Shown here: positions 914 to 16,335 of the stretch, piece after piece
Layout: every line of letters starts with the position of its first letter
Numbering within the stretch: position 1 is the first letter of the stretch
Assembly (NCBI RefSeq): GCF_000143415.4
Contig: NW_003314418.1
Coordinates: 137,891 to 154,301, forward strand
Reading direction: 5' to 3'
DNA length: 16,411 bases
Source of the DNA: Selaginella moellendorffii
Taxonomy: Eukaryota; Plantae; Lycopodiophyta
Made by a program: the position numbers and the translations under genes
Notes under the pieces: generated by a model
Databases searched by the model: none
What the model was told of the DNA's origin: nothing
Seen by the model: the letters and a program-made list of their open reading frames with translations, nothing else

Positions 914-1259
914 AAGGATTATGGAGGGTTCCCAATGTATAGTAGGGATAATGGTTAGAATGTATGTCTCACCACCTGAGATATTAGTTTGGCTTCTATT
1001 GGGTTGTGTTGCTCCTTGTTTTGCGTCCAGCTTGGGGCTAAGCCCAAGCTCCATGCTGCTCTAGTCAGTGGGGTAGCTTCTTCCTCGCATTAGGTCACTG
1101 GTATGCCAAAATTGTGCTAGATTTCGTCTGACACCATTTTGCGTGTAGGTGCTGGATATGAGGAGCTGGTGCTCATGGGATTGTACTGAACCCTTATTTC
1201 ATAGCACAACGGGCTTGGAGTTTGGCTCCAAATTCAGGTGCACTACAAAGAGGAACTGC

Positions 1260-2439
1260 AAGACATGGGTGACACTGCTGCGGGGATTTGCTCACGGCGG
1301 AGAGATTGGGCGAGCGAGAGAGGTGCTGGATCAGATGCCCGAGACGAATGTGGTAGCGTGGACAATCCTCGTGCAGGGTTTCGCACAGCATGGGCGAGTG
1401 GGTGATGTGAAGGCCACGTTTGATTCCATGCCCGAGAAGAACAGCATCACTCATGCGGTGATGCTCATCATGTTTGCGGAGAATGGATTCGTGGAGGATG
1501 TCTTCCAGGAGATTGTACACCAAAACGCGATCCTCTGGGGGGCGATGCACTGCTGCTATGCCCAAAATGGGGATTTGATTCAAGCCAAGAGTTTGTTTGA
1601 TAGGATGCCTCTGCACAGCATACTTTCGTGGACGATTATGATCAAGTCATACGTGCAAAAAGGTGACGCTGATTAAGGAAAACAATTGTTTGAAGCAATG
1701 CCACACAGAGGTCTTGTTTCATGGAACTTGATAATCACTGTTTATGCCCAGAGAGGTTGTTTCAAAGAAGCTATACGAGCGTTTTCTTTGTGTTGCTGCT
1801 GGGATTCCTATTCATGGAACACAATTCTCGTGATATACGCTTTAGATGCAAATATTTGTGAGGCGAAGAAGACGTTTGATAGAATACCAACTTGGAATTT
1901 TGTCTCCTGGAACACGATGCTAGCAGCATATACCTAGACCGGCCATGCGTATTCTGCGATCCAGCTTTTGGGTGATGTTTCTTCACGGCTTTGATCCTGA
2001 TAAGGTAGCGTTTGCCATCGTTTTGACGGCGTGTAGCCATCTGGGGCTCGTCAAGGAAGCAAGCTACTTCACGGCAATGAGCTTTGACAATGGATTGGAC
2101 CATTCGCAAGACCACTACACCTGCATTGTTGATGCTCTAGGACGGCTAGGGCGATTGGAAGAGGCCGAGGATGTCCTGGAGAATATGCCTTTGCCAGCTG
2201 ATGGAGTTGCATGGGCAACGTTTCTTACCGCATGTGAAAACCACAGGGAGATGAATCAAGGGATGCATGCTGCGGAATTTACGTGCCAGTCCAGCCTTGT
2301 GAGTGATGCATTGCCTTATGTGATGCTGGAGAACATCTTCAGATTTGATGTGTTGACCCAAACATCGATTGTTGATAGCCAGCCATTCTGTGAGCCGCCC
2401 CATCCCTCATGGATGGAGAGCGGACGCACAGAGGATTGA
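1260..2439 (+). pseudogene. PLS-class PPR pseudogene (tandem 31-aa SS-like motifs, then P2-L2-S2-E), apparently 5'-truncated
   Basis: Repeats such as VVAWTILVQGFAQHGRVGDVKATFDSMPEKN; L2/S2 FAIVLTACSHLGLV..HYTCIVDALGRLGRLEEAEDVLENMP; E1 VAWATFLTAC. Interrupted by TAA (1674-1676), TAG (1935-1937) and a frameshift near 1965. No DYW domain. Confidence 0.9.
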
Positions 2440-4320: not shown

Positions 4321-5010
4321 CTAAATAGAAGACAAGTGCCTGAGGCTGTACGTATCGAAGTACAAACCAAAGAAGCAGATCAATGGATCTCCCCGCAACA
4401 CATCAATCAGCAGTCGAATGAGCCGAGCAGCACATTCTTGATCCTCTTCCAGTCGATCCACTTTCCTGTAACCAATGGTACTACCGCTGCTCACCAGGTA
4501 CCAGCCCAGCTCGCTGTCCCATGCCTCGACGTGATATTCCATGACCCTTTGTCCCATGTTTACTGGCTCTCGGATCTCCAGTACGTTGAACTTTGAGACC
4601 TTGCCAAGATCAAGCTCGATCCAGCCGGTCGACTCCCCTTGCATTGGAGCCCAGAAAGTTTCCATTCGGCCCGAACGAAGAGCTGCGAACGCTGCTTGCT
4701 GTCACGGACAAGGGATTCGCTGCTAAGTTGACGCTGAAGATGGAATCTATGGCGGAGCTAAACCGCTCCAGCGTCTGGAAGTCGGATTCGTCGATCAGTC
4801 CCGACGAGTTTGGAGGGACGTTGAGCAGGAGCAAGCAGTTCCTGGCGGATGATTTGTAGAAAACGTCGAGCAGCTGCTCCAGGGATTTTGGAGCCTCGTT
4901 CCTGTGCCAAAACCAACCAGGCCTGATGGAGATATCGCACTCCGGAGGGAGCCAGTCGGTTCCAGCACTCTCTCCAGACATCAAGTACCTGTTGATGTTG
5001 CGAATTGGAT
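4321..5010 (-). pseudogene. FUC1: Alpha-L-fucosidase (GH29, plant FUC1-like) C-terminal half, 5'-truncated and frameshifted
   Basis: DWLPPECDISIRPGWFWH..LLDVFYKSSARNCLLLLNVPPNSSGLI (ORF 4610..5290) continues after a frame change at ~4666 into METFWAP..LEIREPVNMGQRV..GSTIGYRKV (ORF 4321..4665, beta-sandwich domain). The N-terminal catalytic part is absent. Confidence 0.9.
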
Positions 5011-5014
5011 CGAC

Positions 5015-5340
5015 TCCTCCGGACGTGGCTTGGGCTCCTCCGGGCGCGGCTTGGACTCCTCCCGCTGTGGCTTCGGCTCCTCCCACTGAGGCTTGGCCTC
5101 CTCCTGGCGATGATCCATGGCCTCCTCCTCCCGGAGAAGAACCGCGGCGTCCTCCTCCTAGAGTAGAACCATGGCCTCCTCCTCCCGGGGCACCCCCTCC
5201 TCGAGCCGCCTCAGAACCATGGCCTAATCCTCCCGGGGCCAGATTCAGAGATCCGCGGCCAACCCCGGCCACCCCGCGCCCTCCTCCCACTCCATGGCCA
5301 CCTCTCCCTCCATGGGCACCTCTTCCTCCTCCTGTTGGTG
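5015..5340. repeat. GC-rich degenerate minisatellite: Gly-rich on -, WPPP/Pro-rich on +
   Basis: Recurrent (cca)tggcctcctcctcc units. Open on both strands (ORFs 4610..5290 - and 4926..5537 +). Confidence 0.8.
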
Positions 5341-5523
5341 AAGATAGAGCACGAGCAGGCCCAGATCCAGCTCGATCGGCCCCATTTCCCAGAGCTCTGT
5401 TTCCTCTTCCAACCCTAAAATCGGATTACCTGCTTCTTCCTCTCCTCATAAATCTCCGCGGCTGCTGCCATGTTTTAATTCTCGGGCCGTGCCGCGAGAT
5501 CAGATCTTCTTCGCAGGCACGCC

Positions 5524-5532
5524 AAACCCTAA
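5524..5532. promoter_or_regulatory. Telo-box (AAACCCTAA), with a partial copy at ~5411-5418
   Basis: Exact motif at the boundary between the GC-rich tract and AT-rich intergenic DNA, upstream of aaaacATGGC (5471, - strand). Function is inferred only. Confidence 0.45.
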
Positions 5533-6858
5533 CCTAAGAATCTTCTCGAATATTTCCGGAATAATTTTTAACAACTTCCCTTAAAATAAAATGACAACAC
5601 TTTAGATTTGGTCGGGGTTTTTGAAAATTACTTAAGAATCCTCCCTTTTTTTTCGTGCGAATCCAAAATACTAATAATTTTCCCATAAAAAATAAGGGTA
5701 AGTACATTACTTTAGCTTAAGCTATTGTGCAAATAGGGAAAACGTAAATTTTGAACTTTAATTTTCGTCTCTTGGTCCAGAGCTAAACTCTTATAAACAT
5801 CTCTAAACATGCTCATTTAATTAACCACCAATGAACGGCAAAGATATTTTTACCAGCACTCCCCCACTAATTTTCTTTCGAAAATAAAAAACTAAAAGCA
5901 AAGAAGATATTATCAAACACTATTTTTTCAATGTTTGTTTTTTTTCTTATTTTCTACTATTAATTAACTTACAACTCAATTACACAATATTTGGAGCTGG
6001 AAGAATTGAATCCAAATTAATTTCAGCAAACTGATGAGGATGGACAATTTTTATTTTCATTTCTTTTGCTTTCTTAATTTACATTTCTTAATTTGTTTCT
6101 ACTCTTCTTATACACACTTCTTCAGTGTATTTGGCCCATTATATTTAGCTGAAACACATGTACATGTACACTAGTACACTACGTACTAAGCCTATGATAC
6201 ACAGTTGTTGCTAATTCTCAACGATTTGTGCATCTGCTGGTTGATACACACACACACACTGTGTAGGGCTAGCTCCATCCACAAGAGAGCCTTGAGGTTG
6301 GGCACCAGAGGCTGGAAGAAGTCGTCACAGGAGAGAGCAAGCAGGTCACCACTCACTACAAGCTCAAAAAATCTGGAAGGAAGACGTCGCCAAGGAACTG
6401 GTGAGTACGTCGCAAGAAACAAATGCCGTCGTCACCAGCTTCCACACGTCTTCAACGTGCTCTAGGAGCACAAACCCAAAGTTGGTCATGCCACAAGCCA
6501 CCATCACCTTGCTCCCGGAACATGAGGCAGTACTTGCTATCAGCAAAGAGTTTGGGTACTGGCAAGTCTTCATACTAAGGCTTATTATCTGAATCTGGGC
6601 GCTCTGTTTTGGGGCACCTGTTGGCAGGTTTAGTCAGCATTCCCCGATTCTGCTACCAAAAAGAAATTTAAATTTAAGACAACGTGTCATCCTCCTTTTG
6701 CATAGTTTTAACTTTTAAATGTTAAGTTTTTTCTCCGTGAAGTTCAGGTTGGTGGCAGTACTTTGACGAGGCATGCTCACTCAGCGGCCCATGTTTCTGC
6801 TTGACTCACGGAGGGTTTAAAACCAGGGATAACTGCAAGAAAGAGCACTGACATGTTT

Positions 6859-7263
6859 TCAAAAGTAGTTGTCACAGGAACATCTGCCATCCTGGAACAC
6901 ATGAACCCGACTGGCATCTTTGCAGATGATTAGCCTTTTTTCCAGCTTAGAGATGAGAGCAGTGGCCGCATGGCAATCGTCACAAACTCGGAGATTTTTC
7001 ACGATTCTGATGGTCTCCTTCTGGTGCGAGTTCACCAGAGCACACCCCAGCGCAAGCTTCTCACTGTGGCCGCACAGGTGATCTTCCTCAGGTATGTCTT
7101 TTAGAACGTTGATCACATCGCTCGCGTACCCCTCCTCTTTCATTCTCAGCAACAATTGCTTGAGCTTGGCCGCAATCTCGTCGCTCTGTGAGTGACTCCT
7201 ATCCCCGACAGAAAAAGAATGCACTTTTCCTGAGCTAACATCCGTCCACCAGCTTCTCCCGGG
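6859..7263 (-). other. DYW deaminase domain, DYW:WW subtype
   Basis: PGRSWW begins at 7263, HSE lies at 7068-7060 and CDDC at 6984-6973. The terminal tripeptide is NYF. Confidence 0.92.
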
Positions 7264-10200
7264 CTCCCTGAAGCTGCCTTCACCTCTCATTCTCTCCACA
7301 ACAGCGGCTCTTTCACTGAGCATCCCCAGGTTTCCAAATATATTGGCCATCAATGCGTAGGGCGTGCCGCTCTTGGGATCCATCTCCACAAGACGCTCAA
7401 ACGCGAGTTTGCCGATCGTGTAATTCTTCCACTTCCGACAGGCTCCGAGCAGGGACGTCCAAACCACTGCATCCGGTTCAAAAGGCATGGCTCTGAGAAC
7501 TCTCACAGCTTCGTCGAGGAGGTTAGCTCGCCCGAGCATATCGATCAGGCACACATAATGCTCCAGACGTGGCTTGACTCCATACTGCTTGGGCATTTCA
7601 TCCAGAAGCTGCCTTCCTTTCCCGACCAGACCACCATGGCTGCAAGCGTTCAACACCGAAACAAAACTCACATCGTCAGCTTTACAGCCCTCTTCCTGAG
7701 TCATGGAATAGAAACGCTCCAAGGCCTCGATCGATCGGCCCTGGAGAGTGTAAGCCTGTATGAGAGAGTTCCAGAGACCCGTGTCGTCCCGAGCTCGGCA
7801 CTCGTCAAACGCTTCCTGAGCAGAATCAACATCGCCGCATTTGCCGTAGAAGCTCACCAGGCTGGAGCCCAGAACTGGATTGTTTTTCAGCAGCCCTTTA
7901 TGCTTCGCCAGCTGGTGAATCTCCCTCCCGAGCTTGATCGCCATCACACTCCCGCAAGCAACAAGGACGCAGGTGTAGGTGCAAGCATCAGCTTGAATGG
8001 TGTTATCAGCTCTCAGGGCAGAGTAGTACTCCAGAGCAAGTTCAGCTCGCCCGTTCGTGTTGCAGCCCTGGATGATCGCAGTGTAGGACACAACACTCCG
8101 AGTTCCCATGGAGTTGAAAATCTTGCGAGCCTCCTCAAGCTCGCCACACTTGCAGTACATGTCTACCAGGCAATTCGCCACGAACAGATCTAGCTGTTTC
8201 TTCTCCTTGCTCAGCATTGAATGGATCTCCATCCCGATGCGTAGAGCTCTCTCCCTCTTCTCGCTGGATTCGGTAGCAAGTGTGGAGCAGGCGCTGATCA
8301 CCACGACATGAGTCTGATCGTCGGGTTGAATGGTGTTATCAGCTCTCAGGGCAGAGTAGTACTCCAGAGCAAGTTCAGCTCGCCCGTTCGTGTTGCAGCC
8401 CTGGATGATTGCGGTGTAGGACACAACACTCCGAGTTCCCATGGAGTGGAAAATCTTGCGAGCCTCCTCAAGCTCGCCACACTTGCAGTACATGTCTACC
8501 AGGCAAGTAGCCACGAACAGATCTACCTGTTTCTTCTCCTTGCTCAGCATTGAATGGATCTCCATCCCAATGCGTAGAGCTCTCTCCCTCTTCTCGCTGG
8601 ATTCGGTAGCAATTCTGGAGCAGGCGCTGATCACCGCGACATGAGTCCAATCGTCGGGTTGAATGGTGTTATCAACTCTCAGGGCAGAGTAGTACTCCAG
8701 AGCAAGTTCAGCTCGCCCGTTCGTGTTGCAGCCCTGGATGATCGCGGTGTAGGACACAACACTCCGAGTTCCCATGGAGTGGAAAATCTTGCGAGCCTCC
8801 TCAAGCTCGCCACACTTGCAGTACATGTCTACCAGGCAATTCGCCATGTACAGACCTAGATGTTTCTTCTCCTTGCTCAGTACTGAATGGACTTCCATCC
8901 CGATGCGTAGAGCTCTCTCCCTCTTCTCGCTGGATTCGGTAGCAAGTGTGGAGCAGGCGCTGATCACCGCGACATGAGTCCGATCGTTGGGTTGAATGGT
9001 GGTACAAGCTCTCAGGGCAGAGTAGTACTCCAGAGCAAGTTCAGCTCGCCCGTTCGTGTTGCAGCCCTGGATGATCGCGGTGTAGGACACAACACTCCGA
9101 GTTCCCATGGAGTGGAAAATCTTGCGAGCCCCCTCAAGCTCGCCACACTTGCAGTACATGTCTACCAGGCAATTTGCCACGAACAGATCTAGCTGTTTCT
9201 TCTTCTTGCTCAGCATTGAATGGATCTCCATCCCGATGCGTAGAGCTCTCTCCCTCTTCTCGCTGGATTCGGTAGCAAGTGTGGAGCAGGCGCTGATCAC
9301 CGCGACATGAGTCCGATCGTTGGGTTGAATGGTGGTACAAGCTCTCAGGGCAGAGTAGTACTCCAGAGCAAGTTCAGCTCGCCCGTTCGTGTTGCAGCCC
9401 TGGATGATCGTGGTGTAGGACACAACACTCCGAGTTCCCATGGAGTGGAAAATCTTGCGAGCCTCCTCAAGCTCGCCACACTTGCAGTACATGTCTACCA
9501 GGCAATTCGCCACGAACAGACCTAGATGTTTCTTCTCCTTGCTCAGTACTGAATGGACTTCCATCCCGATGCGTAGAGCTCTCTCCCTCTTCTCGCTGGA
9601 TTCGGTAGCAAGTGTGGAACAGGCGCTGATCACCGCGACATGTGTCCAATCGTCGGGTTGAATGGTGTTATCAGCTCTCAGGGCAGAGTAGTACTCCAGA
9701 GCACGTTCAGCTTGCCCGTTCGAGCCACAGCCGTGGATGATCGCGTTGTAGGACACAACACTCCGAGTTCCCATGGAGTGGAAAATCTTGCGAGCCTCCT
9801 CAAGCTCGCCACACTTGCAGTACAAGTCTACCATGCAAGTCGCCACGAACAGATCTAGATGTTTCTTCTCCTTGCTCAGCATTGAATGGATCTCCATCCC
9901 GATGCGTAGAGCTCTCTCCCTCTTCTCGCTGGATTCGGTAGCAAGTCTGGAGCAGGCGCTGATCACCGCAACATGTGTCCGATCGTTGGGTTGAATGGTG
10001 GTACAAGCTCTCAGGGCAGAGTAGTACTCCAGAGCAAGTTCAGCTTGCCCGTTCGAGCCGCAGCCCTGGATGATCGCGTTGTAGGACACAACACTCCGGG
10101 TTCCCATGGAGTCGAAAATCTTGCGAGCCTTCTCAAGCTCGCCACACTTGCAGTACATATCGATCAATCCCGTCAACAAGTAGATGTTGCTTTTGTGCTC

Positions 10201-10605
10201 ATCACTCTTGAGCACAGCTTCATGGGCTTGTTTTCCCAAAGAAAGGGATCTGCTCTCAGCTGAGTCTCTCACGCGGTGTATCAGCCTCCCTAAACTCACC
10301 GGTTCCTCACCAGCTACAGCTGGGGTATGTGGAGATTTGTAGCGGGCCGTGGTGGCCTTACCTACAGCTGGGTCAGCGAGCGACTCGAGTTTTGCAGAGA
10401 CCCAGGTTGGTGTTTTCCTGTTGGCGATCCACAGGCTCTCTCCGGTAGAAACATGTTTGAAATCCGGGTAGGACTCTGAGAGGAACTTGTTTTTCTTCTT
10501 GAACCTGTTGTCCCACCAGAAAGTGGGATCCCTGAAAAACGTTTTCCACTCCATGAGATTGTTGAGAAATGACACACACCACACAAACCCTAGCGCCGCA
10601 CGCAT
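6859..10605 (-). CDS. PLS-class PPR protein with N-terminal OSB-type PDF motif and C-terminal E1-E2-DYW(WW-type) cytidine deaminase; putative C-to-U editing factor
   Basis: Uninterrupted 1248-aa ORF with about 25 PPR motifs, P2-L2-S2, E1 (VVWTSLLGAC), E2 (PYALMANIF), PG box PGRSWW, HSEKLA, KNLRVCDDCH and HVFQDGRCSCDNYF*. The start could be M1 (10605) or M18 (10554). Confidence 0.95.
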   Translation of the reverse strand: MRAALGFVWCVSFLNNLMEWKTFFRDPTFWWDNRFKKKNKFLSESYPDFKHVSTGESLWIANRKTPTWVSAKLESLADPAVGKATTARYKSPHTPAVAGEEPVSLGRLIHRVRDSAESRSLSLGKQAHEAVLKSDEHKSNIYLLTGLIDMYCKCGELEKARKIFDSMGTRSVVSYNAIIQGCGSNGQAELALEYYSALRACTTIQPNDRTHVAVISACSRLATESSEKRERALRIGMEIHSMLSKEKKHLDLFVATCMVDLYCKCGELEEARKIFHSMGTRSVVSYNAIIHGCGSNGQAERALEYYSALRADNTIQPDDWTHVAVISACSTLATESSEKRERALRIGMEVHSVLSKEKKHLGLFVANCLVDMYCKCGELEEARKIFHSMGTRSVVSYTTIIQGCNTNGRAELALEYYSALRACTTIQPNDRTHVAVISACSTLATESSEKRERALRIGMEIHSMLSKKKKQLDLFVANCLVDMYCKCGELEGARKIFHSMGTRSVVSYTAIIQGCNTNGRAELALEYYSALRACTTIQPNDRTHVAVISACSTLATESSEKRERALRIGMEVHSVLSKEKKHLGLYMANCLVDMYCKCGELEEARKIFHSMGTRSVVSYTAIIQGCNTNGRAELALEYYSALRVDNTIQPDDWTHVAVISACSRIATESSEKRERALRIGMEIHSMLSKEKKQVDLFVATCLVDMYCKCGELEEARKIFHSMGTRSVVSYTAIIQGCNTNGRAELALEYYSALRADNTIQPDDQTHVVVISACSTLATESSEKRERALRIGMEIHSMLSKEKKQLDLFVANCLVDMYCKCGELEEARKIFNSMGTRSVVSYTAIIQGCNTNGRAELALEYYSALRADNTIQADACTYTCVLVACGSVMAIKLGREIHQLAKHKGLLKNNPVLGSSLVSFYGKCGDVDSAQEAFDECRARDDTGLWNSLIQAYTLQGRSIEALERFYSMTQEEGCKADDVSFVSVLNACSHGGLVGKGRQLLDEMPKQYGVKPRLEHYVCLIDMLGRANLLDEAVRVLRAMPFEPDAVVWTSLLGACRKWKNYTIGKLAFERLVEMDPKSGTPYALMANIFGNLGMLSERAAVVERMRGEGSFREPGRSWWTDVSSGKVHSFSVGDRSHSQSDEIAAKLKQLLLRMKEEGYASDVINVLKDIPEEDHLCGHSEKLALGCALVNSHQKETIRIVKNLRVCDDCHAATALISKLEKRLIICKDASRVHVFQDGRCSCDNYF
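7993..10159 (-). repeat. Coding tandem array, 333-bp period (111 aa = S31 + P36 + long L44), about 6.5 copies
   Basis: tcgccacacttgcagtac recurs at 8141, 8474, 8807, 9140, 9473, 9806 and 10139, an exact 333-bp spacing with no indels. Confidence 0.98.
10387..10548 (-). other. PDF motif resembling that of OSB organellar ssDNA-binding proteins (aa 20-73)
   Basis: WKTFFRDPTFWWDNRFKKKN..YPDFKHVSTGESLWI..TPTWVSAKL matches the recalled OSB consensus W..ff..P..WWDNR..K.np..PDFKHK.tGeaLWl...P.WV...L. Confidence 0.88.
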
Positions 10606-11435
10606 ACCCTAGAAATCCCGATTTGTTAGTACTTAACTGTAGCAGTAAAAAGCTCGTGGTTTCTGTTTTTTCTTTTTCTAATTCTTTTCCTTTTTAAACT
10701 TTACAATGTCACAGCTTAACTGCAGCAGCTTAGATGTTTATTGTGTCTTTGATATATATAGAAAGTGAGCCAGCAGCAATCAGTTGCTCAAGAGCTGAAG
10801 AATCAGTACATGCATAATTTTCAGACAATGGGGCGACATGCCCAGAAGCCTCAGGGCACCAGTTTCATGCAGAACACTTTCGCAAATGACTCTCGCCCGG
10901 GGCCCATGCACAGGAGTCCTCGGGCGGTGGTAAAACCTCACAAGGCCTCACGTAATTATATTCACTCTGCTCCGCAACATATGTTACCACACCAAACTCT
11001 TCGCACATGAAGCCATGCACGGAGGAAAAAACCAAGCAAGGCCTCACGTGCTTACATTCAGTCCTTCTATGTGTTCTTGGCCTCACTCAGTTCATCTCCT
11101 TTGTTGTCCACCTGCGCTTCTTTACTTCATGTTTTTGCTTGCATGCTTCAATTGACATCTTCAGATTTTCAAGCGAACGATTGTGGCATACCGTGGCTAC
11201 GTTTTTCGGCAGAGCTTGGAGGTGCTGAAAGTGGCATTAAGTTCGTGGAAGATTGATCTTGATTTGGATTGTATGGATCTCTATAAATTTTGAAACTTGA
11301 GTTTATTTTTCTTCTTTTTCTTCTGTGGTTCCAATTGACTGGTGTCAAACTTGCTTTTGCAGACTATCTCTAGTACTTCTGGATGCGATCAAGGCCTGCT
11401 GCTCATTGCTTCAAAGGAGGATATGATAAGTGATC

Positions 11436-12017
11436 NNNNNNNNNNNNNNNNNNNNNNNNNNNNNNNNNNNNNNNNNNNNNNNNNNNNNNNNNNNNNNNNN
11501 NNNNNNNNNNNNNNNNNNNNNNNNNNNNNNNNNNNNNNNNNNNNNNNNNNNNNNNNNNNNNNNNNNNNNNNNNNNNNNNNNNNNNNNNNNNNNNNNNNNN
11601 NNNNNNNNNNNNNNNNNNNNNNNNNNNNNNNNNNNNNNNNNNNNNNNNNNNNNNNNNNNNNNNNNNNNNNNNNNNNNNNNNNNNNNNNNNNNNNNNNNNN
11701 NNNNNNNNNNNNNNNNNNNNNNNNNNNNNNNNNNNNNNNNNNNNNNNNNNNNNNNNNNNNNNNNNNNNNNNNNNNNNNNNNNNNNNNNNNNNNNNNNNNN
11801 NNNNNNNNNNNNNNNNNNNNNNNNNNNNNNNNNNNNNNNNNNNNNNNNNNNNNNNNNNNNNNNNNNNNNNNNNNNNNNNNNNNNNNNNNNNNNNNNNNNN
11901 NNNNNNNNNNNNNNNNNNNNNNNNNNNNNNNNNNNNNNNNNNNNNNNNNNNNNNNNNNNNNNNNNNNNNNNNNNNNNNNNNNNNNNNNNNNNNNNNNNNN
12001 NNNNNNNNNNNNNNNNN
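11436..12017. other. Assembly gap (582 N)
   Basis: Run of N. Confidence 1.
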
Positions 12018-12533
12018 CAAAGAGGTGAGGTGTCTTAAAGAGGAGATAATAGAGCTGAGCATGGAGCTGAACTTGGCTTTTGCTCCTTCTTGTAAGAGCT
12101 AACTAGCTAGCAAAAACAGAGGAGATGGTGAAAAGGATGCCTCTTGAACTCCAAGAGAGCAACAGACCTTTTTTCTTAAGGGGGGGAGAAGCTCAGAAGT
12201 AGGAGCAGTGGAGCAAGAGGTTAGGGCTGATGTCATCCCTGTGCGCCAAGACTGCTGGGTGGTTCGGGGCTTGGTTAAAGTAGGCAACCGGGTGGAGGCA
12301 GGGGGTTGGGAGCAATCCGAGGCTTGAGGTATGACTTGTCTTTTCTACCTGGTGGAACTCCATCCGAGCATTCCTACTTCCCTCTTTTAAGCTGCGCGAG
12401 TTAGCTCGTCACATTTTTACTCTAATTTCACAATAACTCGCATTTTCACTCTAATTACGTCCTTTTTTCCCTTCCTCCCCCCCCCTCATATCCCTAAACC
12501 TCAGGATCATATGGAGCATATAAAAAATGTGAT

Positions 12534-12610
12534 TAACACCTCTCACTCTTGATCTTGTGGGATTCATAATATGATAACACCTCACTCCTACTCTTGTGGG
12601 CTCCATAAAT
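12534..12610. repeat. Imperfect tandem duplication, ~41-bp period
   Basis: taacacctctcactcttgatcttgtgggattcataat followed by taacacctcactcctactcttgtgggctccataaat. Confidence 0.7.
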
Positions 12611-12659
12611 ACAATCTTGTTGAGTTTATCTATATCTACCATAGAATATATGGTAGAAT

Positions 12660-14097
12660 CCTTACATCAATCCGTTCACACACAATATCGAGCTAACTGC
12701 TTCACATGGATCTTCTCTTGACGTTGTGCATTGAGTGCCCCACATAGATTTGTGGACCAACTTGTTGGACGATGTGATAAGGACCTATGCAGCAAAAGCC
12801 TTGGATCCGCAACACCCGATAACTCACCAACACTTGATCTCCAACGACATATGTAGAAACTTTAGAAACTCCAGCGGGTGCAAAGTCCGGGCAAAAGTAG
12901 AGTGGAATTCAGTTATTCGGAATGTGCCACACCCAGGAATTCAATCCAAAGCTCTTCTCTTCAAAGTGATTGTGTCAGGTTTATATCCACGAAACTGAAG
13001 ATCTTGCCTAGACAGGGTGGTAACTAGAAACAAGGAATCGATTGGCACTGCTCCTCTCAACACAAAGAAGGTCCAGGATGGAATAGCAAAAGAGATGTTG
13101 AAGATATGGAAGTCACATTCCTACCCAGGTTAAGTCAGAAAGAACCAGACCATCTGACAGAGGCATTAGCTGATCGCTTGTTCTTCAACGTAGCGCATAA
13201 GAACAGTAATCAACAGTATATAGGTGACTGTTCAGCTCCAGGCTTGGGTAGAGGTCTTTGGCCTAGGTGGCATAGAAATGTGGGAGCTTCAATCAAAGAC
13301 TTATTGGATCTACAAAGAGCTAGCAAGCCATCACTTACATGTTGGGATCTTGTTTTTCTTCCTCAGCAGTGGACAAGGTATGATACAATGAAAAAGGTAA
13401 AGTCAGGTATTTGTTTAACGTCCGCTTGGAGCAAACCCTGCTCATCGGATGGCCTCATGACAACCCAGGATGAAAACTCCACATCAAAGCTTAAGGCGCT
13501 TGTGATCGTCTTCATCTTGCTTTACAAACTGAAGTTATCGAGGTTCGTGATTGGATAATGCTTGATGGTGCTGAGACTCAAATCATCTTTGTTATGGAAA
13601 CAACCCCATCACCTCAAGGTATTGTTTTGTATCCCCATAACAGTGGTGCACTGTTTCCATGTATAGTTCCCGAGGAGGTCCCAATTCCCAGGATGGCCTT
13701 CGGTAAAAGGATCAGGACAATACATCAGAGAGGGAAATACCCTGAACTGGATCCTAAAGTTCAACTGGGAGAATGCTCTGCAATACACTAGTTTGGGGAG
13801 TACCTAAATCTGATCTTATGTAGGATCCGGCTCATACAGGTCTAAGCATGGCAGAGAGCTTTTGATGGATAAAATTGACACCAGGCTTATGCGGAAGTTG
13901 AAGAATCGGAAGTACATTGTGAACATGTGGAAGACACTGGTGGAAGCTAAGGTAAGCTGGCTTCTTGTGCAGGATAGCATCCCTGTTGGTGATTGGCTCA
14001 CAGTTCACAAAACTCTGTGTATTCTATGCAATGAAAACCCCGTGGAGATGCTTGAACACCTCTTCACATGCAAATTTGCAGTTGGTATTTGGCTCTT
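12660..14097 (+). mobile_element. Degenerate LINE ORF2 3' region ending in a zf-RVT-like domain
   Basis: zf-RVT is clear at 13832-14097 (SYRSKHGRELL..MWKTLVEAKV..CILC..EHLFTCKFAVGIW). The upstream extent is tentative, based on broken same-strand ORFs and a weak post-RT-like N..L...WI..R......LW..LL pattern at ~12680-12770. Confidence 0.55.
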
Positions 14098-14711
14098 TGA
14101 TCAGAGACCTAGGTCCAGAATCAGCTGGTTCATCACGAAATACGGTGACATTTTTCCCTCTGCTCCAACTATGATGAACAGTAGCTGAGGAGAGAGAAGC
14201 TAGCAAAGCATCCCGCTAACAAAACCACTAACTGTCTCACGTGACACAACACCTCCAGCCCTCAATGGGGTCAGAAAGAAAGAAAGGATAGGAGCAAGCG
14301 ACTACTTCTCCTCTTCCTCTGGAATGTCATCCAAGTCATATTCAAAATTAGGAAACAACATCATCCTCAGCTTCCCATGTAGCATCATATGGAGAATAAC
14401 CATTCCACTGAACAAGTAACTCTCTCCAAGTCTTACGACGTGTGCATGCTAGCCGTTGCTATAACACACAAGTAGGGCCAACCTTCAAACATCTATCTCT
14501 GGAATCTTGATTGCAGACTGGTCCAAGATATTACCAGAATGCAAACATGCCTTCAACTTCCTACATAGAAGACAGGATGAATCTTCACACCACTAGGCAA
14601 GTCTAGTTGATAGGCAAGGTCTCCAACTCGTTTGAGAATAATCCAAGGCCCACAGTACTGTGGCGACATCTTAGAACTACCTCCACCTTGAAGAGCTCAC
14701 TGAGCTTCAGA
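13835..14711. repeat. Dispersed inverted repeat, copy B (pairs with 1..844)
   Basis: Direct reverse-complement alignment. Copy B carries 34 extra bp between TCATCC repeats at 14327 and 14361. Confidence 0.97.
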
Positions 14712-15650
14712 CAACTGAAGGAAAACCTTGTCTCCAACCTGAAAATACTTGTGCTGACAATGCTCATCAGCCAACTCCTTTGCCTGGTGCTCCTTAAGAG
14801 AAGCCAAGTTCATACCAACAGGGGACCAAGGTTGAAAGCCATACATTGCCATAAACAGAGCCATCTCAATAGCCAAATGGAGGGCACAGTTATGGGCAAA
14901 CTCTAACAAAGGCAGGTACTTCTCCCAAATACCTTGCCTCTTCAAATGACCAACAAACGATCTCAGCATGTCTTCCAGCACCTAATTAACTCGTTTTGTT
15001 TGTCCATCTGACTGTGGATGCTCATGCTCAGCTTTGTCTCAAGCTTCTGGAACACCGTCTGCCAAAACTCCAAAGTGAACATGGAATCCCAATCACTTAC
15101 AACATCCTTAGGCAGCCCATAGAGAAATACAGCTGAGCAAGGTCAAAAGCCTTAGCATTCATATTCACAAGGAAGAAGTGAGCCAACAGCATCACATAAT
15201 CCACAACAACCCAGATAGCATCATTGCCTTAAAGTGCCTACTATGAAACTCATAGAAAATGCTATCCCACTTCTGCTGAGGTTAACTATGGTAGAGACCT
15301 TCATGCTTCTGACAATCCATTGTGACTGCCTGGCTGGTCTAACAACTATGCACATACTTATCAACACTTGACTTCATTCCAGGCAAAAATAAATGCGTCT
15401 CTACCAGAACACACGTCCTCGATCAACAGACACTCTTACAGAATCCACTGTCAACGACTATCTGAGTCTTTTGAGGATCTTTCTGCACACCATCTCATGG
15501 CACCACATGTCCGAGATAGGTGATCTCCTCCAAGAAGAACTCACTCTTTGACAGTTTAGAATACAGCTTATTCTCCCTCAATAGCAGCAGCATTTGCCTC
15601 ACATGCATCTCATGTTCCTCCTTAGTCGTAGGACATCATCAAAGTAGTGC
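14098..15650 (-). mobile_element. Ty3/gypsy chromovirus remnant: partial RT, integrase, chromodomain, putative LTR; internally deleted
   Basis: RT: YFDD (15646-15635), LRENKLYSKLSKSEFFLEEITYLGHVV..DPQK. Integrase: PGMKSSVDKYVHSC, DAIWVVVD, GLPKDVVSD, HPQSDGQT, LEDMLR..WEKYLPLLEFAHN, GPW..HPVF. Chromodomain LVQWNGYSPYDATWE. Many stops and frameshifts. Confidence 0.92.
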
Positions 15651-15659
15651 CTCACACAT

Positions 15660-16335
15660 GAGATTGCATAACTCTATCAATAGAACTGTTTAATAATAGT
15701 TAGCCTTAGCCATCATATGAAGCAACATCTTTGCTGAGTTAGAAAAGACTCCTTGAGCATTCCAAAACTTCAAAATGAGATAGTCAAAGGATCTCAGCTA
15801 GCAATAAGTTGTTCTAGCATGGTTAATCATTTTTTTGATTGATTTTTCTTGGTTGATTTTGTATTATATTGCCATTCATAGTGATGGAACGTTATACTCA
15901 AGTGATGTCAAACCTTCAAGGCTGTAGGTGAGCTTGAATGGTGTCAAATTTATTAAAACCTTATATGCAGTTTGATATGTCTACAAAGCATCGTAAATGT
16001 GATCGTCCCAGTCTTTCTGATTTATTTTCACGATTTTCATGAAGATGTTTTTGAATGCTACTTGACTGTTGCCTTGAGGATAGTACGGTGTTGAAGCCTT
16101 GTGTTGGATAGTGAATTCTTGAGTCAAAATCTTGATGGTTTCATTGATGAAATGTGTTCCTTGATCAGTGACAAGTTCTCAAGATTTATGATGATGTTTT
16201 TGTAAATGAACTTTGTTGTGTTCTTTGTTGTAGCAGTCTTTATTAGTTGAGCTTCAGCCCATTTTGTGATATAGTCTATTGCAATTAGAATGTACTAGTT
16301 TTGCTTGGAGCTTGTCATAAGTGGACCAACAAACC
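15660..16335 (-). mobile_element. Second, distinct Ty3/gypsy integrase remnant (non-chromovirus, Athila/Tat-like type)
   Basis: Manual translation: FVGP..YILIAIDYITKWAEA..ELVTDQGTHFINETIKILTQEFTIQHKASTPYYPQGN..KDWDDHIYDAL*TYQTAYK..TPFKLTY. It is more AT-rich than the adjacent element. Confidence 0.85.

Follow-up and report, generated by a model that had tools for sequence, protein, structure and literature searches.

Near-identical triplets and differing code strings in a multi-copy family of Selaginella PPR-DYW genes

RNA editing sites in Selaginella number in the thousands, as do its PPR genes (3,861 in S. moellendorffii; PMC13386178), and how new site-specific editing factors can originate so rapidly is an open question. 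A 16,411-nucleotide stretch of the S. moellendorffii genome (hereafter the window) poses this question within a single gene. An initial annotation described an array of near-identical PPR units there as a recently amplified scaffold whose base-specifying residues toggle, acting as a "rewritable specificity cassette". We asked whether variation in this array is concentrated at the code positions, how the codes change, and what may maintain their differences.

Architecture of the gene and its array

The sole long open reading frame (ORF) of the window, at 6859-10605 on the minus strand (1248 aa), contains PPR, E, E+ and DYW Pfam domains and represents an S. moellendorffii PLS-class PPR-E1-E2-DYW gene. 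The start chosen by the ORF caller (10605) lies 17 codons upstream of an ATG that is conserved across copies (MEWKTFF); that earlier ATG is out of frame in several copies, and three sequencing runs carry a 2-bp insertion at 10571. Counted from the conserved ATG, the coding sequence spans 6859-10554 (minus strand, 1231 aa). On this same strand, the protein opens with a PDF-like motif (WWDNR...PDFKH...LWI; 10420-10551), recognized from the sequence and from a similar motif in Sphagnum and Diphasiastrum PPRs, while a Pfam scan of the N-terminus gave no match. The near-identical array, S1-[P(36)-long L(44)-S(31)]x6-P7, occupies 7987-10185, as delimited by a tandem-repeat call, alignment and predicted helices, with P motifs starting at 10092, 9759, 9426, 9093, 8760, 8427 and 8094. 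A non-repetitive tail common to all family copies (L-S-P2-L2-S2; 7471-7986; predicted positions -8 to -4) leads into the E1 and E2 motifs (7264-7470; Pfam E_motif and alignment to the synthetic PPR-DYW 9kfx). The DYW deaminase domain (6862-7263; PF14432, E 2.6e-27; compared with PDB 9kfx, 7o4e and 7w86) has a PG box (PGRSWW), HSE at 7068, CxxC at 6984, a second zinc site and a C-terminal NYF.

Judged by this architecture, with P-L-S triplets followed by P2-L2-S2-E1-E2 and a deaminase holding the PG box, HxE, CxxC and second zinc site, the gene is a PLS-class PPR-DYW of the PG type. Its PG box and HSE place it with C-to-U DYW:PG factors and apart from DYW:KP (PMC9478123); they stand where U-to-C enzymes have a KP box and an HAE active site. 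The triplets, P2-L2-S2-E1-E2-DYW tail, PG box, HSE, CxxC and second zinc site are shared with C-to-U factors such as PpPPR56 and OTP86. Unlike those proteins, in which triplets are typically ~30% identical, the Selaginella triplets show ~87% protein identity, the L motif has 44 residues, there are ~25 motifs and a PDF-like N-terminus without an evident transit peptide, and the gene belongs to a family with many near-identical paralogs. The window copy also differs by a three-residue deletion in the gating domain: 9 bp are missing in frame directly before the HSE, at the gating-domain end (7075-7098, minus strand; a gap against 9kfx and 7o4e). This deletion is found in the window copy only, as the longer form is present in 10 of 10 other copies checked and runs X1, X13 and X17 contain the deleted bases. 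The gating-domain region has been tied to DYW activation (PMC7611903), and the window copy may be a weakened family member.

By inspection of the copies, the conserved ATG directly precedes the PDF-like motif with no evident transit peptide at this start. Just upstream of the ORF, TACTAAC, a pyrimidine run and an AG (10609-10631, minus strand) resemble a 3' splice site that is not conserved in all copies; the AG at 10610-10609 is in frame in most copies, and an upstream exon is possible. Contigs from two runs, which we guess to be RNA, cover the gene and stop near 10580-10613 at its 5' end, which fits with expression of the family. Across a wider set of proteins, PPRs with an N-terminal PDF-like motif (that of the window at 10420-10551; P0045, P0002, P0322, P0444 and P0406) tended to have more homogeneous PLS arrays than others (18 versus 468 proteins, Mann-Whitney p 0.011), a loose pattern from a comparison that takes no account of kinship.

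Family copies and their genomic setting

Protein searches with the full-length sequence or the units alone returned only 30-46% identical PPRs and two broken models, and the full-length protein was not found in the protein collection searched. The family emerged only with a C-terminal query, which matched S. moellendorffii proteins at 97-99% identity, in clusters of ~30 gene models (some redundant) on ~10 scaffolds. In public gene models the arrays are spliced out or cut short (models of 617 aa and 364 aa), which may explain why our literature search, with most subscription papers outside its reach, found no description of the family.

We recovered 12 further copies (L001-L012) from the public assembly, giving 13 with the window, whose own scaffold is absent from the 12 fetched loci. 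Full arrays contain 4-9 P motifs with mostly intact frames, and the same ATG (window 10554) and an open frame to the DYW domain occur in all copies except L001, which lost its N-terminus through deletions, L006, which is more distant and split, and the partial L012. The array of L003 is interrupted by a sequencing gap, and four copies other than that of the window have CxGC at the zinc motif. The C-terminus has a pN/pS of 0.30 across family copies, indicating that the family is under purifying selection.

The gene sits in a duplicated segment (5511-16333, no strand assigned), parts of which are 85-97% identical to other loci. Flanks of the family loci are likewise 85-97% identical, so the gene has spread in duplicated segments that lie among transposon remains. 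Alleles and paralogs are indistinguishable here because L002, L008 and others have flanks of ~95% identity; for the same reason we rejected the idea that the gene is single-copy with L001 as its other haplotype. Elsewhere in the window, an inverted pair at 1-862 and 13835-14688 (95-99% complementary, a zf-RVT fragment in each) flanks a 13-kb region, and the same element accompanies most family copies, on their upstream or downstream side. At 1149-2439 (plus strand), stops or frameshifts break a second, unrelated PPR gene into three ORFs. Pieces of an alpha-L-fucosidase / F5-F8 gene at 4321-5290 (minus strand), with a Gly-rich 21-27-bp repeat at 5012-5236, have been duplicated together with the PPR gene in L001, L002 and L008, and 11436-12017 is an assembly gap (582 N).

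None of the reads or contigs in the sequencing runs checked extends across the whole array. Run X17 has one contig at depth ~10 for each flank and two P-type pieces with depths of 46.5 and 20.3, which sum to ~6.6 P motifs per gene with a T:N ratio of 4.6:2.0, against 5:2 in the window, if contig depth, not strictly copy number, is taken as such. Short-read depth is consistent with a real array, supporting its size and leaving the unit order putative. Over 6700-10700, the X17 flanks are single long contigs, compared with a dozen or more copies in the reference assembly; accessions may vary in family size, or the copies may have collapsed at low coverage.

Recombination reassorts two half-motif blocks

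Tandem Repeats Finder placed the array at 7993-10158 with a period of 333, 6.5 copies, 94% matches and no indels, in frame. Each 111-aa unit comprises S (31), P (36) and long L (44) motifs, with borders and numbering that agree with predicted helices, and 82 of the 111 columns are invariant among window units. From N to C, S5 reads T,T,N,N,N,T,N with S always last; the P 5/last pairs are NN,ND,TN,TN,TD,TD,TD; L2 is R,W,R,R,W,Q and L last is D,G,D,G,D,D. Re-read from the window translation, these agree in full with the residues listed in the initial annotation, including its observation that all four P-motif code states (NN, ND, TN and TD) are present. It had also counted L2 and L last as code positions; the residues are as given there, but these are weak specificity positions and count for little, since L motifs serve chiefly as spacers (PMC7190159). 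At L2 of unit 6, the Q occurs in the window copy alone, and an R codon takes its place in most or all of the depth of three runs (8315 T>C).

The formal test that the initial annotation had asked for shows code positions to be more variable than expected by chance. Recurrent variants among window units fall in 4 of 6 code columns and 10 of 105 others (Fisher p 0.002), and a circular-shift test that keeps linkage gave p 0.027 (5/last) and 0.009 (2/5/last) in the window and p 0.009-0.018 over 41 internal family units. Variants also recur in the ten non-code columns; the initial annotation had noted that some non-code residues co-vary. Its premise that natural PPR arrays are highly degenerate describes most matches (median ~32% identity at triplet spacing), but some PPRs, in moss, lycophyte, fern, conifer and amoeba, are 65-85% homogeneous. 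P0258 and P0086, whose repeats are 100% identical, were excluded as probable assembly duplications. In PLS arrays of Sphagnum (P0045), Diphasiastrum (P0002, P0322) and Cryptomeria (P0001, P0414), triplets are 66-80% identical. As in Selaginella, their code positions are 1.6-3.8 times more variable and several have the PDF-like motif; unlike Selaginella, they are built of canonical 101-aa triplets of older divergence, and the Sphagnum cluster keeps one code string. The Selaginella array is so the extreme end of a continuum of partly homogeneous PLS arrays across moss, lycophyte, fern, conifer and amoeba. The amoebal PPR-DYW proteins of Balamuthia mandrillaris P0424, P0429 and P0461 have 65-77% identical triplets.

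The residue-by-residue toggling envisaged earlier gave way to a different picture, in which codes switch as linked half-motif blocks. Over 65 units, S5 (T30:N22), P5 (N29:T36) and P36 (N31:D34) are all near 50% frequency, and internal units comprise TD 13, TN 12, ND 8 and NN 8. P12, P13 and P16 track P5 (r2 0.6-0.8) and P30 and P31 are linked to P36 (r2 0.94-1.0), whereas linkage between the P5 and P36 blocks is lost (r2 0.04) over the 40-nt, almost invariant stretch that separates them. The block alleles are N5-G12-S13-Q16 or T5-N12-T13-R16, and C30-T31-N36 or D30-N31-D36, and the four P codes are recombinants of these two half-motif blocks. Independent point toggling at P5 and P36 is rejected by this linkage. 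Since codes arise as recombinants of linked blocks, nearby non-code residues vary like code residues; P12, P13, P16, P30, P31 and also L13 are as variable as the code residues themselves. The T/N state of S5 is a separate switch that flips alone on several backgrounds. In L001-L012, S5=N is followed by P5=N in 1 of 52 units, with ~7 expected from the margins; P5 and P36, at equal distance, reassort freely.

Units differ by 15.1 nt within genes and 15.6 nt between genes, at least nine recombination intervals are required and 38 of 40 internal units are distinct. The ~95%-identical 333-bp S-P-L triplets form one pool common to all copies, in keeping with the recently amplified scaffold of the initial annotation, and recombination inside invariant stretches reassorts the two half-motif blocks. 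The comparison between copies that it had called for revealed differences in unit number, unit order and code order; the window and L001 each have seven P motifs, out of register. Code state follows array position, mostly via end units (rho 0.38-0.56; internal units 0.19-0.31), with first units tending to NN-type and last units to TD-type, a gradient as predicted by descent from two ancestral triplets.

Predicted targets, selection and the origin of new readers

With S2 set at -4, the standard PPR code yielded ten different predicted target strings with an identical tail from ten fully read copies. The variable units are predicted to read ~-28 to -9, with P7 to P5 at -9 to -15, a range that overlaps positions -15 to -6, which are reported to determine specificity (PMC12604669). 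Predicted targets are A/G-rich, while the sequence contexts of Selaginella editing show a preference for U and an avoidance of G and C (PMC12604669). A scan of the gene itself, the locus and neighbouring transposon DNA for self- or transposon-targeting found no excess of predicted targets over shuffles.

Common unit variants comprise 12 nonsynonymous to 1 synonymous, compared to 56 to 42 for rare variants (p 0.011); the contrast loses significance (p 0.21) when blocks are taken as the independent units, because the 12 common nonsynonymous variants fall in about five blocks. Array-wide pN/pS is ~0.8, and pS at code columns alone is unusable, with few sites and a value driven by the last unit. 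A Sphagnum PPR-DYW cluster with 79%-identical triplets has a code enrichment ratio of 3.6 (p 0.01) and a single code string in 8 of 8 members read. As this array is equally enriched with a fixed code string, enrichment alone does not prove rewriting, and differences between copies are the stronger evidence. Copies do differ in their code strings. A rewritable specificity cassette would imply selection for new targets, which the contrast between common and rare variants suggests but the block-level count (p 0.21) does not bear out.

We consider it probable, from sequence comparison, that this is a young multi-copy S. moellendorffii family of PLS PPR-DYW (PG) C-to-U editing factors and a birth-and-death source of new editing specificities, much as RFL genes are for P-type PPRs. 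The RNA-reading tract draws on one pool of S-P-L triplets that vary in number and order between copies; by the standard code, each copy is then predicted to read a different sequence at ~-28 to -9, and tail and deaminase stay constant. In this reading, hybrids would have arisen by unequal crossover and gene conversion between an N-terminal NN-type and a C-terminal TD-type triplet, selection would maintain differing code blocks as the scaffold is homogenised, and the substrate would be organellar mRNA. In its favour are the domain order and catalytic residues, the thirteen copies with their differing arrays and predicted targets, the single pool of recombining units, the unlinked blocks and near-50% code switches, the contrast between common and rare variants, purifying selection on the C-terminus, the X17 depth and the contigs of the two probable RNA runs. 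Weighing against it are the negative scan for targets, the conserved start without an evident transit peptide, the block-level p of 0.21, the positional gradient of code states, the A/G-rich predicted targets, the DYW deletion of the window copy, the CxGC of four copies and the lost N-terminus of L001.

The same hybrids could be by-products of unequal crossover in a neutral accordion, in which one triplet was duplicated, the two copies diverged once and the gene was then spread by segmental duplication among transposon remains, with the common tail setting any target and the distal code unselected. This account, which we hold possible but a minority prospect, explains the positional gradient, the equal variability of linked non-code residues, the array-wide pN/pS, the block-level p of 0.21, several damaged copies and the equally enriched Sphagnum array with its one code string. 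It sits poorly with three code switches near 50% beside only one common synonymous site, with S5 flipping alone on several backgrounds, with array frames open in nearly all copies, and with P7 to P5 lying within the specificity stretch (PMC12604669). At the other extreme, it is rather unlikely that programmable cytidine deaminases form a natural combinatorial library here, with half-motif blocks kept at intermediate frequency by selection and reassorted every few generations into new specificities, for new organellar sites or, without a transit peptide, non-organellar nucleic acids.

A non-organellar repertoire, whose substrates in the cytosol or nucleus would be single-stranded DNA or the RNA of transposons, viruses or the host, would make shuffling an arms-race device. 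The conserved start directly at the PDF motif, a putative single-stranded nucleic acid binding motif, would suit this, as would predicted targets unlike organellar contexts and clustered, fast-changing copies; in human cells, nuclear transcripts can reportedly be edited by plant editing factors (PMC9508816). PDF-PPR relatives in Sphagnum nevertheless have a long presequence-like N-terminus, the in-frame AG leaves room for an upstream exon, and neighbouring transposon DNA lacks a target match. We know of no natural non-organellar PPR-DYW, and regard such a role as improbable. Finally, arrays or unit order might be read chimeras from alleles and paralogs, as the many 95-99% identical copies, the unspanned array, eight private substitutions in window units and the private Q and 9-bp deletion could indicate. 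We find this very improbable, since both P types occur at multi-copy depth, between flanks of single depth, in independent runs, 5-26 nt separate one unit from another, frames are intact and common sub-orders recur between loci such as L007 and L009.

TAL effectors and PRDM9 zinc-finger arrays, which bind DNA, also consist of near-identical repeats that vary at base-contacting residues and change by repeat recombination. The likeness to our preferred reading is analogy without homology: the Selaginella code is split over two residues 31 apart, one unit reads three bases, and the Pfam scan found no TAL family (33-35 aa repeats, RVD at 12-13, DNA binding). The closest precedent is PPR shuffling in RFL clusters (PMC5075784; radish Rfo, PMC2848758), which share gene clustering, unequal crossover and conversion, motif gain and loss, and high variation at positions 5 and last with altered predicted targets; in RFLs, predicted targets shift through recombination and through variation at positions 5 and 35 (PMC5075784). 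RFLs are an angiosperm clade of P-class proteins without E/DYW domains or deaminase, whereas the Selaginella gene is a lycophyte PLS-DYW with near-identical triplets on an editing enzyme and breakpoints inside the P motif; the family works like RFL without being a member. Synthetic consensus PPRs (dsnSc/GRASP, dsn3PLS-DYW; PMC12604669, PMC8110955) have the same repeated scaffold, NN/ND/TN/TD codes and DYW fusion, but the Selaginella array is natural, its non-code residues travel with code residues and its S motifs are only TS and NS.

The family offers a near-isogenic natural series, with one tail and deaminase, ten predicted readers and traceable breakpoints, so that the origin of editing specificity can be tested by expression in E. 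coli and by comparison with the editome. The series also makes visible the scaffold residues that travel with each code, which is useful for PPR design. With targets that are predicted, the reshuffled blocks among sister genes could show how new editing enzymes arise.
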